Source of the DNA: Bugula neritina
Lineage: Eukaryota > Animalia > Bryozoa
Reading direction: 5' to 3'
NCBI GenBank assembly: GCA_964035545.1
Contig: OZ037765.1
Span: 11,418,698 to 11,482,697, forward strand
Length of the DNA: 64,000 nt
The notes under the pieces were generated by a model, which was given only the letters and a program-made list of their open reading frames with translations, was not told the origin of the DNA and searched no databases. The first letter of the stretch is position 1, and each line of letters starts with the position of its first letter. Shown here in pieces: positions 38,171 to 61,700 of the stretch. The translations under genes and the position numbers were made by a program.

Positions 38171-42500
<4,330 letters not shown>

Positions 42501-52700: not shown

Positions 52701-55700
52701 CCCCAAAACAGCTACTCTTATTCTCAGAGTGACTCTCAAGCTAACGGCACCCACTTTGATGGTGGATACAATAAACAGGGCTATTACAAACCTGACGTAT
52801 CACAGCAGCCATCCAATCACACGCAAGGATATGCTGACTACGATAGCTTGGCAGCAGCTAATCAAGAGGCAGAACTGAGTAGAAGGGAACTGGTTGCTAG
52901 TCGGGAGCAACTTGCTCAGAGTAGAGAACATTTGGCCCACAGTCTAGACAATTTATCTCAAAACGAAAAGCTTCTAAGCAGCAGTCAGGAGCATTTGGTA
53001 ACCGCTGACCCACCCAACATGTACCACAGTAATCCTGCCTATGAAGACGAGCAGCCATTTTCTAACACCAACAATCGGCAAGAAGATACTAGCAGGTGAG
53101 AAGATTGAGGGTTAATTTTTAATTGAATGTGCTTTGCATTTCTTTTATCGCTTAGAATTTATCTTCACACATTTGTCCCAGTTGTTCAGCCTTAAACTCT
53201 AGGAATTTTAAATTACTCAGTTGTATAGTTGTAACTTTTAGTGGCCATCTAGAGTAAGATAGACAAGTTCCCTATAAGCTATCTAGTTGACAGCTCAAAC
53301 TGATCAAAACAATGTCTTCCATATTAAAGCCTAGATATGCAGATTAACAAGTTTTATTGGAATAGCCGCCAAGTTTAATCCTTCTGAAATTATGGTGATT
53401 TAGGTTTAACAGCTATAGTAATGGTGAGCACACATACGAGAACAGCCATCTAGAGGATAAAGAGCCTTATGGTAAGTGTGTATTTATATTTTATACACTC
53501 TAGTGATGACACCTTCCTGATAAAGAAGTTCTAATGTTATTTTAGTTTATTACAAACAATATATTGTATGTATGTAATAAAAATGAAACGGAACTGTTCA
53601 GATGTAAAATCTATTTTTTAACTACATAGTCGAACTGCTAACCATAGTGTAAAAGGCTTCAACTGCTGTACAATTCTTCTTAAAAAGAGATCATTATTCA
53701 CACAGCTTTTAAAATTTGTCATGAAGAGGAGAAGCTTGGTTCACTTTAACTGCAATCTTCACCAGGATTGTTTTTTCAAGCTTTTTTTTCGAGTTCTGCA
53801 TCACATTTGATAAAGTAATATAAAACTTTTCTGCATATTGACTATTGTATACTTTCTGTCAACCTGGTAAACTTGTTTTACATTTTCTGACCAAATTTTG
53901 GCTGTCACTGCTGATTTATCTGAAACAATTAGGTTGACTTCGGTAAGCTTTAAGTTTGCATCATTTCGCAAATAGTTGATCTTCAGCAAGTGGTAGTAAA
54001 ACTTTTTCAACTCTAAAAACCATTGTTTAGGGTCTGCTGAAAAACTGGATTTCTAAACACACATAGAAGTACAACTTTTCTCATGCCACTGGTAAAAAAA
54101 TAATATTTTGCTTTTGCCACTAAAGCATATTGCATAAAATCCAACATTTCAATTTCGAGTTGCTGAGTGTACACAACTCCTCAAACTTATTTTTAGGATG
54201 GTATGTTGATTAAAAACTGAGACTGGGATATATAGATATTATTTATTTTAAATTTTTTATCATATATCACTTAATGTTTGTATAATAGAACAAGGACAAC
54301 GTAATCCAAGTTGGGGGCTTGCAATTCATTAGCGCCCCAAATACCCACTTATTCTTATATTTTTACTTCTGTAATAACTCTTACTTGCTTACTTCTAGTT
54401 TATTCTCTATGTACAGGGCAGAGGCTGGCTTCAGGGTCTATGTAACATAAATTAAAGAAGCTAACCAGGAAATACATCAACTTTGTTGATATTAATTGAA
54501 TAATTTTCACATTTACCTCTATAGTAGCACTAATCATTGCTGTACCTAATGGAGAATGGAAGTTTCTTACCGACTAAAACATCTTGCAGTCTGCAAACTA
54601 AATTTAAACCAGCATTTTTATAACTTTTAAAAAATTGTATTTCAAAAGTCTAGAGCCAGTTACTGTTGATTAGGAAATATTTACTTGAAAGGAATTTTTT
54701 TACAAAGTCTATGCTTATCAAGACTGGTGAGTGTAGGATAAATGCCGCGCCTTTATTCTCTCTGTCCAAAAAGAAAAAGAACTTTCAAAGAGCATATCTG
54801 ACATGAAGTAATAACTCCAATGTTGTAACTTTACTAGTTGCAAATTGCTGTCAGTGACTCAGTGTACAGCTGTGTAGACAGTGTTTGACAACGTAATTAT
54901 TACAGCTAATCAAATGTTTTTCACTAATTTAGTCAAGTGCTCCCTTCAGCTAAATAGACTCAGTGTTTAAAGCTAACTCCTTGTACAGGAGAAAGGGTGG
55001 GTTTTCTTCCTACACCCACCTAGTAATGGTTAAAGCTTTCAGCAATAGGCCATGCCTGTTCTTCAAGTCTCAGCAGTCTCTCAGCTTCTCTTTATTGCAG
55101 TATCAGCTGCTGTGTTGTGGGTTGTTATACTGTTGCTGCGAAGGGTTACAGAGCATACATGGATTACTGTTACAGAGATAAACCTGTATATAGTTACGAG
55201 TATATTCATTACTCACTATTGGCTAGAAAAGATGCCCCAGCATCATCTATCCATTTACTCTCAGCTGGTATATTGAGTTTTCATGCTTAGCACTGAACGT
55301 GAATATTTTAAGAACTTTGCATCCGCTGTTTGTTTTATGGGGGACTGAAAAGCTGGAAGATATTTATGTATTTTTGTGTTCAATATTCATCCTTTATCTG
55401 CTTCAACATAGTTGTTTGTACTATTTGCAGGCACCTATGGAGATCGGCCACCATCTCGTAGTGACAGGCATCCTTCATTTGCTGACCAGTCATCACACAA
55501 CGACCGGCCACCATCACGTAATGTAAGCAGGGTTTTCATTTAGCAACAGTTTTGATCAACTTAAAAAAACTTATACTCGTTACTTTTTACAACAAGTTTT
55601 GTCAATTTAAACCATCATCTTATAAACTTTTGTATTATAATAGCCACAAAACACATTTTCCAATTTACGGCTAAAGCCTTAATTCTGGCAGAGCATCAAA

Positions 55701-58700
55701 CATACATCAAACAGACGTACTTGTTATGTACTCTTTAATACAGTTGAGAAATTCCTGTAGGTTTGGCCATCTATTAAAGATAGTCCAGCCTACCAGTCTT
55801 CAGGCAGTCATCCCATGCTGACGGACTTGAATGGACTGTACGGCAGCAGACACTCGGTGGCTAGTAGAGCCAACGCTGACCTTGACCAACATTGGCGACC
55901 TCCAGACTTGCCGGAGGTCATCGAGTTCCTTAGCCATCCCAACGATGCCATCAAAGCAAACGCTGCCGCTTATCTCCAGCACCTTTCCTATGGAAACAAT
56001 GAAATCAAAACTAAGACCAGGTATGATTAGTTTTTCAACTTTTAATTGCTTTCTTTTACAGAATTGGGTTTCTTTGGATTTGAAATAAAGATGAGTATGA
56101 GTATAAAATTGTCTAACATAGCCTCATTTTCAAACAATGGAACTGTGGGAAGTTTATCATAGTATTAACTGTGGATACTGTATAGAAATGATTCATTGTT
56201 ATAGTTTAGAATAATGATATGACAGTAAATAGACCATGTAAAACTCAGCCAATCAGCGAAGTGTACCAGGTCAATGTCTTACCATTGTAACTGATATAAA
56301 ATTCTGCAAGTTCAATTGCAAAATGCATGCTTCTAAAAGCTAGTTGTGCAACTTTTTTTTCATGCATTATTTAATTTCATATCTTAAATTGATGACTCTT
56401 GAAATGAATTTTTAAAATGTCTAAATTAAGTGTTTATAAAATGCAATTAAAAATTTCATGTCTAGAAAAATGACCTGGTACACTTTTGCAACTTAAGGCC
56501 AATTATTACATAACTGTCAGCTTAGTAGTTATTTGTTGTTGCAGCTTGAATGGCTTATTGTTTAGCATTGGAAGCTTGCAGTAAACATCTGTGAATTTGG
56601 TACATGACTTTGATTGGCTGGTTTTTGAATGGCCCTTTAGTATATGCATCTGGATGGCTAAGTAGTGTAGACTCCGCCTACATCTAGCTAATGTACAGTA
56701 GCCAATCCACAGTAGTATTACAAAATTTCTGTTTAACAAATGAAATATTCTGGTCATTTGTCTTGTACTTTACAATAGTAAATATTCTATTCAACTAGAA
56801 TTTTATTGTATGTAAGCCATGAGAACTACTAAGAGGTTAAATCAACCACCCATGCTAGTAATATTGTAGCTCGCAGTAATAGCAAGTCCACACCATATAA
56901 ATATACACATAAGCTATTATGTGCAGCTTATGAATGCTGAAATGACCCCATTTCTTACCATCAATTTGAAAAAAATTGTATTACATATTCTGCCACTTCT
57001 GCACCAGGAACTTGTTTTCCTTTTAAATTTTGAAAATAGTGGTCAGTTTCTGCAGCAGTCAACATCCACAATAAACAACGTAAGCTTTCAAATAAACTAT
57101 AAATATATGAAATATTAGTGTGGAAACAATGTAATTTATTCATTGCTATGATGAAAAATTATAAGAATATTATATAAAAGCTAGATATAGATTTCTAGTA
57201 AAATGGCACAGGTAAAAATAACACATTTTTACTTCAAATTCTAAATTTCATCAGTCACCAATGGTGGCTGTAGATTACAGAGAGCACAGCAAACTATCAT
57301 AATCTTGTCTAATAGAGGTGCCAACACCAAGTTCACACCTCCAGGACCATTTAAAATATTGAACTCCTTTATTCTTTTGATTGCTCTTTTGACATGGATT
57401 CGAAGGTTAGCAATCAACTTTGTTTGCAGTAACTTAATTTAGAGATATAAAAAAGGCCAGCAAGCATTTGAAACTGTAAATCTTGACGCAGCTTCATCAA
57501 AGCCAATAAAAGTTTATCTTGTCCTGCTAACTTTTTTTCTGAAAATGAGAACTTTCATCTTCGGACATATAAATCTAAATATAGTAAACAAAGAATGAAA
57601 ATTAAATTATGATTCAAATTATAATGTATGTGCTAAATAAATTTTGTGCTTAGTTTGTATTCATTCAGCAGTTTTTACCCTCTGGTAAGTAGCTTCAGTT
57701 ATATTTTGCAAGAACTATGAAGTTCAAGAACTGCTAGTTGAAGGCTTGACCCAATATATCACCATCCAAACAGAATGTAATGTGTGTCAACATGTGTTAC
57801 ATAATACTGTAACAGTACATAATAAGCTAGTTGTATGAATACATCCTTTGAATGAAGTCATGAGTTTAAACAAATACTGTGGACAAACAATTATTACTTC
57901 ATTTTATAATTATACTATAACTAATTCAAACCCATATTATTTCTAGAATAGCATTTAATAATGCTTGTGAATAAGTGAAACTAGTAACAAGTGTAAACCA
58001 TTTTAGTTTTAAACACTGAGTTAGTTTCAGCTAAAAATTAGATAAGGAGGCCACTTTTGATAAGCTTTAAAATAACCAAGGAAAATTTAAGTCAAAACAA
58101 TTTACTTTTCCTGGAGAAAATGAGTCAATTTGTCCACAAATAAAAGACTGCTGCTTGTTTAAATAAAACCCTAAACTAAATAAATCAAAGCATGCAGATG
58201 ACCACTGTGGTATTTATGAATATCTTACATAAAACAACATCTTTAATAAGAAATGTATGAATGATACACTCATACTGCAACAAATTTAATTAAAATGACA
58301 GTTTTACTACACATCAAATTTAATCAATGTACAGATTTTAGCATAGTGAAACTTGCATTGTTTATTTGTAATAAACCATAGTCTATCTTTGCAATAAGAA
58401 AATCATAATTTTTACCTTGCTAAAAAATAGTATAGAGAACGTGTAGGAATTCCAGTATAGAATTTAGTTCGCTCATCTGTAGTGGTGAAAGTTTTAAAAA
58501 CTTTTACTTTTTCAATAGTTGCTTTTTGTTTAAAAACTTTTACTTTTTCAATAGTTGCTTTTTGTTTAAACGTGGAACTTTTTGAGGCTTTTCTTCCAAC
58601 TTTTGATTTTCGTCTATCAATAGAATGTGCAGATCTTTTTTTCTGAGTAGTTGATGATTCTGGTAACTCAGTTACTTCTGATGAAGTCTGACTATGAGGA

Positions 58701-61700
58701 TGGCTGTCAGATGAGTTCTGTTGCTCTATATCAGCTGACTCTGTTGAAGACGTTTTCTGTTCGCTTCTTTCACATGTTTCATTAAAACCACTGTTTTTTT
58801 GTGCGTCTTACATTATATGCTTTAGTGCATTGGTAACCCAAATGAAGGGTTGGAGTTGAATTTTGCTCAGTGGGCTGACCATCCTTATGATTATGATTAT
58901 GATAATCTGCTGTGCTCTCTGTAATCTACAGCCACCATTGGTGACTGATGAAATTTAGAATTTGAAGTAAAAATGTGTTCTTTTTACCTGTGCCATTTTA
59001 CTAGAAATCTATATCTAGCTTTTATATAATATTCTTGTAATTTTTTCACCATAGCAATGAATAAATGACATTGTTTCCACACTAATATTTCATATATTTA
59101 TAGTTTATTTGAAAGCTTACGTTGTTTATTGTGGATGTTGACTGCTGCAGAAACTGACCACTATTTTCAAAATTTAAAAGGAAAACAAGTTCCTGGTGCA
59201 GAAGTGGCAGAATATGTAATACAATTTTTTTCAAATTGATGGTAAGAAATGGGGTCATTTCAGCATTCATAAGCTGCACATAATAGCTTATGTGTATATT
59301 TATATGGTGTGGACTTGCTATTACTGCGAGCTACAATATTACTAGCATGGGTGGTTGATTTAACCTCTTAGTAGTTCTCATGGCTTACATACAATAAAAT
59401 TCTAGTTGAATAGAATATTTACTATTGTAAAGTACAAGACAAATGACCAGAATATTTCATTTGTTAAACAGAAATTTTGTAATACTACTGTGGATTGGCT
59501 ACTGTACATTAGCTAGATGTAGGCGGAGTCTACACTACTTAGCCATCCAGATGCATATACTAAAGGGCCATTCAAAAACCAGCCAATCAAAGTCATGTAC
59601 CAAATTCACAGATGTTTACTGCAAGCTTCCAATGCTAAACAATAAGCCATTCAAGCTGCAACAACAAATAACTACTAAGCTGGCAGTTATGTAATAATTG
59701 GCCTTAAGTTGCAAAAGTGTACCAGGTCATTTTTCTAGACATGAAATTTTTAATTGCATTTTATAAACACTTAATTTAGACATTTTAAAAATTCATTTCA
59801 AGAGTCATCAATTTAAGATATGAAATTAAATAATGCATGAAAAAAAAGTTGCACAACTAGCTTTTAGAAGCATGCATTTTGCAATTGAACTTGCAGAATT
59901 TTATATCAGTTACAATGGTAAGACATTGACCTGGTACACTTCGCTGATTGGCTGAGTTTTACATGGTCTAATAGACTTAGTGTTACTAATAGTTATACAG
60001 AAATACTACTAAGTGAGATCTCTTTATGCTGCCCTTACCCCTCTCTTATACATGCCTGTCTGTGTAACTCCCATAATTAATGAGTAGTCTCTAGATACTG
60101 AATGTTTCATTTAGTAGGTTTTTTATAAACAATTTAACCAGTTTCACCTCAGCCTACGAAGTATTATCACAGTGTAATGGACAAGCAGACTAAATGCATT
60201 ACAGGATTTAACAGGCCTATTCTATGTTACAGAACTCTAAGGGGGATACATGCTTTAGTCAATCTTCTGCACAATGATATTCCAGAAGTTCATAGGAATG
60301 CATTAGGAGCTCTGCTCAACCTCTCCAGGGGATATGAGAATGATGATAATAAGAGAGCTATGAAGAATTGTGGAGGTTTAGAGTCACTGGCACAACTACT
60401 CGAGAGATCTCGAGATAATGATGTTAGGGAGCTTATTACTGGAATACTATGGAATATAAGTTCCTTAGGGGTATGTGACATTTTTTGTTTCCAAATTATC
60501 TAAAATTACGTGTATGCCATCTTATATCAAATTTATAGATGGGTATGAAGATTTGTTTATACTTTCACTTGAATCTTTAGTCAATGAAAGAACTTTACCA
60601 AACTGCTTTGTCTTTCAATCCCTTTCTGTGATCATTACCTGCACACAGCTAACAAGAGTAATTAATATTTTTAGCTGTAGATGTTTAATACTTGCTGCCT
60701 CTTCTAAATGACTTTTAAAATGTGTAATTCTATTAGTTACCATTCTTACTATCACTACTGTGCAATTCACTTTGACACAACACACTAATTTTTCAAGTGG
60801 CATCAAGAGGCAGTGAAGTGAGTCATATTTTGTTATTAGAGATTGATCTTCCACATCAATGTGATTTCAACTCGTTTCAGTGTAGCTAACAATAACTGAA
60901 ACCTAGCACTTTACTTTCAGAAAAGGTATAAAAGCTTGTGAGACTTTCATGACAGGACACAACTTTAATTTCAGAATCTTAGGAAATAAGTTTTTCTTGT
61001 CTTAAGTTGTCACATTCTACTATAAGTACTCGTGTGTATCAAACTGCACTTTATATACACACAGCTCATACTTGCCCAATGTTGTAATGGTTATTTGGTT
61101 GCTTTGCAGGAGTTGAAGAAAGCTGTCATCTCCTCTGTTCTAAAGACTCTGGTAAACTGCGTGATAGTGCCGGCAACTGGTGCGTCTGGCAGGTCTCCGT
61201 ATAAAGTAGATGCTGGGGACATCAGCTGGTCTACAGAGTTTAGAAACGCCACTGGTGTGCTGAGGTTTGAGTTTATCTTCTGTGGCTTTTCTTGGAGCTT
61301 TATTTCACAGTGATAAAAAGTTATTTCTATGTGTACTCTTTAAATTCTTCAACAGTGTTTAGAAATACAGTAAGGAGTTGAAACTTCTTGTAAAAAACCC
61401 TTTGACCAAGTTTTTGGGTTCTCAAGTGAGATAAAATATTAAAGATATTACTATTGGTATGTAAGCTAGGGTACCTGTAATATAAGTTTTAATTTCCATA
61501 CTGTTTACCTGTAATATTCTTAATATAGAAATGTTAGCTCTGATGGACCATATGCTAGAAAGCAGCTCAGGGAATGCCCCGGATTAATTGAGGCATTACT
61601 AAAAGTTGCTAATGCTGTCAATGGAGCTTCTGAAATGGGTGAGTTTGAAGAGTTCTTTGCAGTCGAGTCAGTTTCTTTGACGTCTGCATTTTTGTCGAAT

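Follow-up and report, generated by a model that had tools for sequence, protein, structure and literature searches.

The question raised by this locus is how a DNA transposon can come to carry the end of its own transposase gene, in mirror image, within terminal inverted repeats (TIRs) of about one kilobase. The window analyzed is the whole stretch of 64,000 nucleotides of Bugula neritina DNA (assembly GCA_964035545.1, contig OZ037765.1, positions 11,418,698 to 11,482,697 of the forward strand), AT-rich and eukaryotic in character, with a GC fraction of 0.30–0.39. Its positions 56230-59970 are occupied by a ~3.7-kb (3,741 bp) defective copy of an ISL2EU-type transposon. Comparison with a two-gene relative in the same genome makes it very probable that TIRs of ~637 bp were extended to 1,075 bp by an inverted copy of the element's own transposase tail, with loss of autonomy and spread in trans. 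The copy in the window is a secondary internal-deletion derivative that lacks the catalytic core.

Inverted arms of the window copy

A repeat search of positions 55000-61500 yielded two pairs of inverted segments: 56230-57158 with 59042-59970 (929 nt, 100% identity) and 57154-57304 with 58895-59045 (151 nt, 97% identity). The two pairs adjoin and give arms at 56230-57304 and 58895-59970, each of ~1,075 nt, with 1,590 nt between them; together the arms make up 2,150 of the 3,741 bp, and the mismatches between them are found at their inner ends only. Each arm holds the last 20 codons and the stop of a transposase of the DDE_Tnp_4 type, the final 64 nt of the open reading frame (ORF) lying in the left arm and being mirrored at 58895-58958. 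The ORF itself, at 57241-57417 on the minus strand, is a C-terminal remnant of 58 codons plus stop which contains the E-helix motif and matches positions 113-158 (the last 46) of the Pfam DDE_Tnp_4 profile with E 2e-9. These results bear out two claims of the initial annotation, made from the window alone: inverted arms of ~1.07 kb with the mismatches clustered inward, and the presence in the arms of the last ~20 transposase codons with their stop.

Copy number and size classes of the family

A search of the whole 216-Mb assembly showed the same element at many loci. A pattern of 29 nt from the terminus occurs 233 times in the genome versus 0 times for the reversed control, which corresponds to ~115 copies, and 28 copies with distinct flanks formed the sampled set for the flank analysis. 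BLAST comparison of the loci separated three size classes, all with long arms: class A (~4.18 kb), class B (~3.7 kb) and class C (~3.49 kb, with the left arm cut at position 880). At L042 (C2:813469-820241), a class C and a class A copy are compounded or nested, and termini pair over 11 kb (C2:804395-815680).

Class A copies have 455 bp more than the window copy at the point corresponding to window position ~57436, and this sequence restores IIDCTE...GGRA(S)D...VMADRGF, that is, HTH_Tnp_4 (E 2e-9) plus DDE_Tnp_4. Most of them share a common nonsense codon (GGRA*D), while in copy L043 (C1:13501730-13505881) exon 2 is open over 274 codons. Class B comprises six sampled copies, the window copy among them, which are 98.5–100% identical to one another and have unrelated flanks. 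Two of these, L002 (C4:10756541-10760247) and L003 (C1:6624142-6627848), are 100% identical over 3,707 bp, a sign of very recent transposition. The window copy is longer than the other class B copies (3,741 bp versus 3,706-3,707 bp) because of a perfect 36-bp tandem duplication at 58493-58564, in the remnant of exon 1, which is private to it among the sampled copies. As the window copy is devoid of the 455 bp of the DDE core, it is unable to encode transposase and must have moved in trans; the near-identity of class B copies at unrelated loci indicates that this DDE-less form did so recently, as had been proposed for the window copy from its sequence.

A two-gene parent-type element

The 4.18-kb copies were considered as autonomous parents with a native TIR of 1 kb, a candidate that was dropped since these copies lack THAP codons 1-73 and the start codon, and since a two-gene copy exists. 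Searching the genome for YqaJ (PF09588) gave nine matches, five of which lie 4-5 kb from DDE matches on the opposite strand. Among the nine, one alone belongs to a two-gene copy of the subfamily of the window element. This copy, the C5 element (C5:8897007-8904546, 7,540 bp), was read from overlapping loci (L052/L056/L055/L051) covering C5:8895512-8906046.

The first exon of the C5 transposase has 218 codons with an ATG start and a THAP domain (E 9.5e-8). The second is open over 274 codons, contains HTH_Tnp_4 (E 2e-11) and a complete DDE_Tnp_4 (E 3.7e-46), and its protein is 95% identical to that of L043. The exons were searched separately, and GT...AG splicing between them, deduced from the nucleotide sequence, would preserve the frame. 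The opposite strand carries, within the same TIR pair, a SAP-like exon and a YqaJ exon (E 8e-17; C5:8902827-8903306); a (TA)n-rich microsatellite is present between the exons of this gene (L051:560-846). The YqaJ gene is missing from the window copy and from all the 3.5-4.2-kb derivatives.

The arms of the C5 element match each other over positions 6-637 only (97.3%), so its TIRs measure ~637 bp and do not contain the ORF end. The autonomous relatives with native 1-kb TIRs including the ORF end that would have spoken against the initial annotation are thus not seen in this subfamily, its sole two-gene relative having TIRs that stop before the ORF end. Its right tip lacks the last 5 nt, and the copy is likely immobile. 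It may still supply transposase, as all its reading frames are open and the codon changes on its branch number 14 synonymous and 7 non-synonymous, with a ratio of non-synonymous to synonymous rates (dN/dS) of ~0.14; despite the damaged tip, it would be the best candidate for the source of transposase.

Four sister two-gene ISL2EU copies, L046-L049 (C1:14664676-14669908, C1:21303958-21309202, C7:6555686-6560972 and C8:2188590-2193873), are 99.5–99.8% identical to each other. Their protein shows 83% identity to the query in the N-terminal part of exon 2 (HTH plus the start of DDE), and their arm DNA, in loci that stop short of the termini, gave no blastn match to the arms of the window family.

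Founding junction and probable extension of the TIRs

On its left side, the C5 element runs colinear with class A from position 1 past position 2,136, a stretch that covers the TIR, the 3′ untranslated region (UTR), the ORF tail and exon 2. On its right side, the match is confined to 632-638 nt at the outer end of the derivative arm. When the boundary is aligned, both derivative arms follow the left arm of the parent past position 637, while the right arm of the parent enters there the 3′ UTR of the YqaJ gene. In the window copy, each arm can accordingly be divided in two. The outer 637 nt (56230-56866 on the left and 59334-59970 on the right) are common to both ends of the C5 element and correspond to the ancestral TIR. 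The inner 438 nt of the left arm (56867-57304, minus strand) are colinear with the left side of C5 and consist of the transposase 3′ UTR with the stop and last 20 codons (57241-57304), the C-terminus of DDE_Tnp_4. Both the repeat search and the comparison with C5 identify the inner part of the right arm (58895-59333, plus strand) as the inverted duplicate of this tract, with a non-functional mirror of the ORF tail at 58895-58958.

Homology between parent and derivative ends at C5:8900095, equivalent to window position 58887. The parental sequence reads ...GACCATCCTTA|AAATGTATTG..., whereas the derivative reads ...GACCATCCTTA|TGATTA(TGATTA)TGATAGTCTGCTGTGC..., and the string beyond the junction corresponds, once reverse-complemented, to ...GATTATGATAGTTTGCTGTGC... 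in the ORF tail. In the window copy, this founding junction occupies 58888-58903, where TGATTA units (one or two of them across copies) link parental ...CCATCCTTA with the inverted duplicate. In protein terms, the breakpoint falls after residue 73 of THAP (...VCSIHF|KDGQPTEQ). The founder lost 3,815 bp (C5:8900096-8903910), with the THAP N-terminus and start codon, the intergenic or promoter region and the YqaJ gene, and gained an inverted copy of 438 nt from inside the opposite TIR. As classes A, B and C share the identical junction, with one or two TGATTA units, a single founding event ancestral to the family of ~115 copies is indicated.

Several proposals of the initial annotation can be judged at this junction. 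The ATGATT micro-repeat that it had taken for the junction is indeed the founding junction, lying exactly at the point where the homology to C5 ends, and the ISL2EU character that it had assigned to the transposase agrees with the THAP, HTH_Tnp_4, DDE_Tnp_4 and YqaJ domains of the C5 relative. It had also suggested a look for other copies with two 3′ ends and for an autonomous parent; the structure is found at no fewer than 28 loci, and the C5 copy is of the parent type. Two proposals held in part. The transposase N-terminus was said to be absent, and the first 73 THAP codons are indeed gone; codons 74-218, the intron and part of the HTH are kept. An inverted copy of the 3′ end was said to have replaced the 5′ end, which is correct for the 5′ side of the gene and includes the ORF tail; the parent already had TIRs of 637 bp, and only the inner 438 nt are demonstrably newly duplicated.

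It seems reasonable to interpret these structures as the product of a single, abortive repair of a double-strand gap, in which the template was switched from one of the identical arms to the other. The ancestor would have had the layout of a ~637-bp TIR, a THAP-HTH-DDE transposase, a divergent SAP/YqaJ gene and a second TIR. A strand primed in one TIR may have continued with the other arm as template, and copying would have run 438 nt beyond the TIR boundary into the transposase 3′ UTR and its last 20 codons. Rejoining would then have taken place inside THAP at codon 73, at a short microhomology or filler and with slippage of the 6-nt unit. The outcome would be TIRs of 1,075 bp and a deletion of 3.8 kb that took with it the THAP N-terminus and the YqaJ gene. 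Amplification to ~115 copies would have taken place in trans, into AATT, by way of sites at and near the termini, within the outer 637 bp that derivatives and parent have in common; the subclass of the window copy (six sampled copies) would have lost another 455 bp, from the DDE core. Concerning those sites, inverted copies of the terminal motif lie in the left outer arm at 56234-56268/56598-56632 and 56259-56273/56471-56485, and they are candidate binding sites.

Some observations weigh against this history of the TIRs. Parsimony and one surviving two-gene copy are the basis for the direction of the event, and this copy, being without the last 5 nt of its right end, is not the literal progenitor. 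At 14 of the 16 sites at which the two C5 arms differ, both derivative arms have the allele of the C5 left arm; such a pattern is compatible both with a wholly replaced arm and with an extended inner part plus later conversion, two courses that are inseparable here. The window copy itself, with AAT at either flank, breaks the target rule of the family described below. The inverse history must also be weighed, in which an ancestor with two genes already had the 1,075-bp TIR with the mirrored ORF tail, the arm of C5 on the YqaJ side was secondarily shortened by its inner 438 nt, and a plain internal deletion, with the right breakpoint at or inside that arm, gave rise to the 4.2-kb family. The survival of just one two-gene copy of the subfamily, damaged at its right tip, leaves some room for such a history, and the junction features do not tell the two histories apart. 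It would require three events (early inverted duplication, loss in C5 and founder deletion) instead of one. In C5, the YqaJ 3′ UTR directly abuts arm position 637 with no trace of the inner duplicate, and a tblastn search for the ORF-tail mirror on the YqaJ side of the 83%-identical sister family, in loci that stop short of the element end, gave only noise. We therefore regard the ancestral long TIR as unlikely and prefer the extension of a ~637-bp TIR.

A different issue is whether the extended elements needed a helper. It is quite improbable that the repair event made a compact, single-ORF, kilobase-TIR element that spreads on its own by means of an HTH+DDE transposase translated from an internal start; such a founder, if real, would be a possible model for Spy-like single-ORF lineages and for giant-TIR foldback elements within PHIS. 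That some of the 4.2-kb THAP-less copies are self-sufficient in this Spy-like manner, with an HTH+DDE protein made from an internal ATG, is very improbable. Along with the open 274-codon exon 2 of L043, the private codon changes of this copy (7 synonymous and 6 non-synonymous; dN/dS ~0.24, with 3.55 non-synonymous sites per synonymous site) and the open frames of 244-276 codons kept by several copies of 4.17-kb size, with 86–89% amino-acid identity, speak for it. The counts are, however, tiny, and the selection signal could stem from time spent in, or conversion from, two-gene copies. Moreover, the nonsense codon common to most class A copies, and the deletion of the start codon and of the THAP DNA-binding domain, are against self-sufficiency, which is inapplicable to the window copy, devoid as it is of the DDE core. 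Finally, the window taken alone, showing just two inverted 3′ ends, would lend itself to a local accident, be it a pair of truncated elements inserted side by side in opposite orientation, a foldback rearrangement or an assembly error confined to this locus. Such an accident is refuted by at least 28 separate loci that have unrelated flanks and repeat the structure, each copy with a single pair of ends and all with identical internal junctions.

Target site

Around TAGACCATG...CATGGTCTA (TAGACC...GGTCTA), the left flank is AA in 28 of 28 copies and the right flank is TT in 27 of them, with variation at positions -3 and +3. One repeat family was hit at different points by three class C copies (L022, L024 and L027), which provide mutual empty sites; in all four comparisons among them, the flanks join without gaps as ...AATT.... 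The repeat family in question is dispersed, and its members are 79–88% alike. As read from flanks and empty sites, the family target is A|AT|T with duplication of AT, and the element proper would be AGACC...GGTCT; a reading without duplication, with T...A as the tips of the element, yields the same sequence. The same ambiguity exists in the literature on ISL2EU, for which an A|AT|T target with AT duplication is described (PMC4482050).

The flanks of the 28 copies and the AATT empty sites rule out TA and AAT as the duplication of the family, and the TWA of Harbinger, the AAA|TTT of Spy and the ANT of Pangu do not fit the AATT target either. The initial annotation had noted a clean short duplication, AAT or TA. 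AAT does lie on both sides of the window copy; the family rule is AT within AATT. On the left (56228-56230), AAT conforms to that rule, as A plus the duplicated AT beside the element end AGACC.... On the right (59970-59972), AAT is atypical as compared to the ATT of 27 of the 28 copies. This could be accounted for by a duplication of 3 bp at a non-canonical site, or else by the change of a single nucleotide. No empty allele or haplotig of the window locus was found in the assembly; an empty allele CAGTAAATAGACTTAG would mean a 3-bp AAT duplication at a non-canonical site.

Homogenization of the arms

Mean identity over arm positions 1-870 is 99.16% for the two arms of one copy and 97.6–97.7% for arms taken from different copies, irrespective of whether the comparison is left-left, right-right or left-right. 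Counting copy-by-variant cases, 240 are present in both arms versus 208 in one arm. Variants restricted to a single copy and located in both of its arms number 31, two of them in the window copy. Such variants indicate that sequence moves between arms. Conversion does not accompany every transposition, as L002 and L003 show: the two copies are 100% identical to each other, yet within each of them the arms agree at only 98.4%. The arms are kept alike by sporadic gene conversion within the element. That the mismatches gather at the inner ends is consistent with conversion tracts which peter out toward the limit of homology.

Remaining features of the window copy and genomic setting

Between its arms, the window copy keeps degraded pieces of the transposase gene, all on the minus strand. 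The exon 1 remnant (58415-58887), defined from the ORF list and the comparison with C5, equals parental codons 74-218 without start codon and with an in-frame stop. Read along this strand, an exon-like frame (58415-58807) leads to a GT donor and then to ~0.85 kb without coding content; an HTH fragment comes next, with the C-terminal piece directly behind it. The intron, at 57549-58414 with the donor AG|GTAAAA at ~58414, is predicted from base sequence. The HTH_Tnp_4 fragment (~57423-57548), at the start of exon 2, is frameshifted by a changed length of an A-run, and the profile match itself is found in the 4.18-kb copy. The 455-bp deletion of class B, which removed the DDE core, has its junction at ~57436-57441. 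The direct repeats GCATTTTAG and GCAATTTAG, imperfect copies of each other, lie on either side of the deletion, and TA stands at the join as a 2-nt filler.

The element lies between plus-strand exons at 55815-56030 and 60177-60503 that encode Armadillo repeats (Pfam Arm E 4e-16), which makes it intronic and antisense to the host gene. By eye, these exons resemble a protein of the p120-catenin/plakophilin type. In the host pre-mRNA, the inverted arms of 1,075 nt would form a long hairpin. Elsewhere in the window, there is a perfect (AC)493 microsatellite of 987 bp (39398-40384) and then an (AT)144 tract (40469-40756), which explain a GC skew of -0.5 at 38-42 kb.

Comparison with known systems

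The family is ISL2EU, in the PHIS superfamily, by its transposase domains, second gene and target site. It resembles the described ISL2EU elements (Han et al. 2015, PMC4482050; Han et al. 2014, PMC4122938) in THAP, HTH and DDE_Tnp_4, in the second, YqaJ gene of the parent, in A|AT|T with AT duplication and in the animal host. It differs from them in the TIRs, which in the ISL2EU survey measure 6-259 bp and usually start with GG, a description and not a strict criterion (PMC4482050), while here they start with AG and reach 637 bp in the two-gene copy and 1,075 bp in its derivatives. The TIR range of ISL2EU is thereby extended about four-fold over the 2015 survey maximum of 259 bp. Another difference is that the derivative TIR holds a mirrored piece of coding sequence, and the window copy is without the THAP N-terminus, the DDE core and the YqaJ gene. 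Coding sequence can thus be absorbed into a TIR, which carries a warning for annotation: mirrored ORF tails in TIRs are relics of repair, not genes.

Spy (Han et al. 2014) is alike in having a transposase of the DDE_Tnp_4 type, an AT-rich palindromic target that is uninterrupted at empty sites, and some long TIRs (up to 474 bp); also, the terminal octamer AGACCATG found here resembles the Spy consensus GGANNNNG. The family is nevertheless not Spy: the target of the latter is AAA|TTT, read without duplication, and its single ORF has no THAP, whereas here the empty site is AATT with variable positions -3 and +3, and the parent has THAP and YqaJ. Neither does it belong to PIF/Harbinger, as there is no TWA duplication in 27 of the 28 copies and the second gene is YqaJ, not Myb/SANT.

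Deletion derivatives formed by abortive gap repair are familiar from Ds and its parent Ac, from the P element and from Tc1/mariner. The present family is like them in the junction microhomology, the small filler, the slippage, the mobilization in trans and the outnumbering of the parent, and differs in that the same event also made the inverted duplication which lengthened the TIRs.

In structure and process, though not in family, the element falls with foldback and extended-TIR transposons: the arms are most of it, and their inner 438 nt were recruited from the opposite subterminal region. The closest case is Galileo, of the P superfamily, in Drosophila mojavensis, in some copies of which internal sequence has been drawn into 'extended TIRs' (Marzo et al. 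2013, PMC3573991). The proposal made for them is that one TIR is repaired with the other as template, the copied tract being longer than the TIR (PMC3573991); a general statement of the TIR-repair idea is found in PMC4168063. Galileo 2RT copies share with the present family long TIRs (at least 600 bp) extended by adjacent internal sequence, and the arms of a copy are 98–100% identical. The superfamily and the target are different. Here, furthermore, a parent-type copy and a base-exact junction are available, an ORF end was recruited, and a single founder gave rise to a whole abundant family. The origin of very long TIRs has mostly been argued from end products, whereas in this genome the parent type, the exact junction and the descendants coexist; taken together, they make the step from 637 to 1,075 bp directly readable and tie it to the event of loss of autonomy. 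The family also lends itself to the questions of whether mobilization is favored or hindered by longer arms and of how inverted arms homogenize. The extension of TIRs by recruited internal sequence was already known from Galileo; what is new is the parent-derivative pair with its exact junction.

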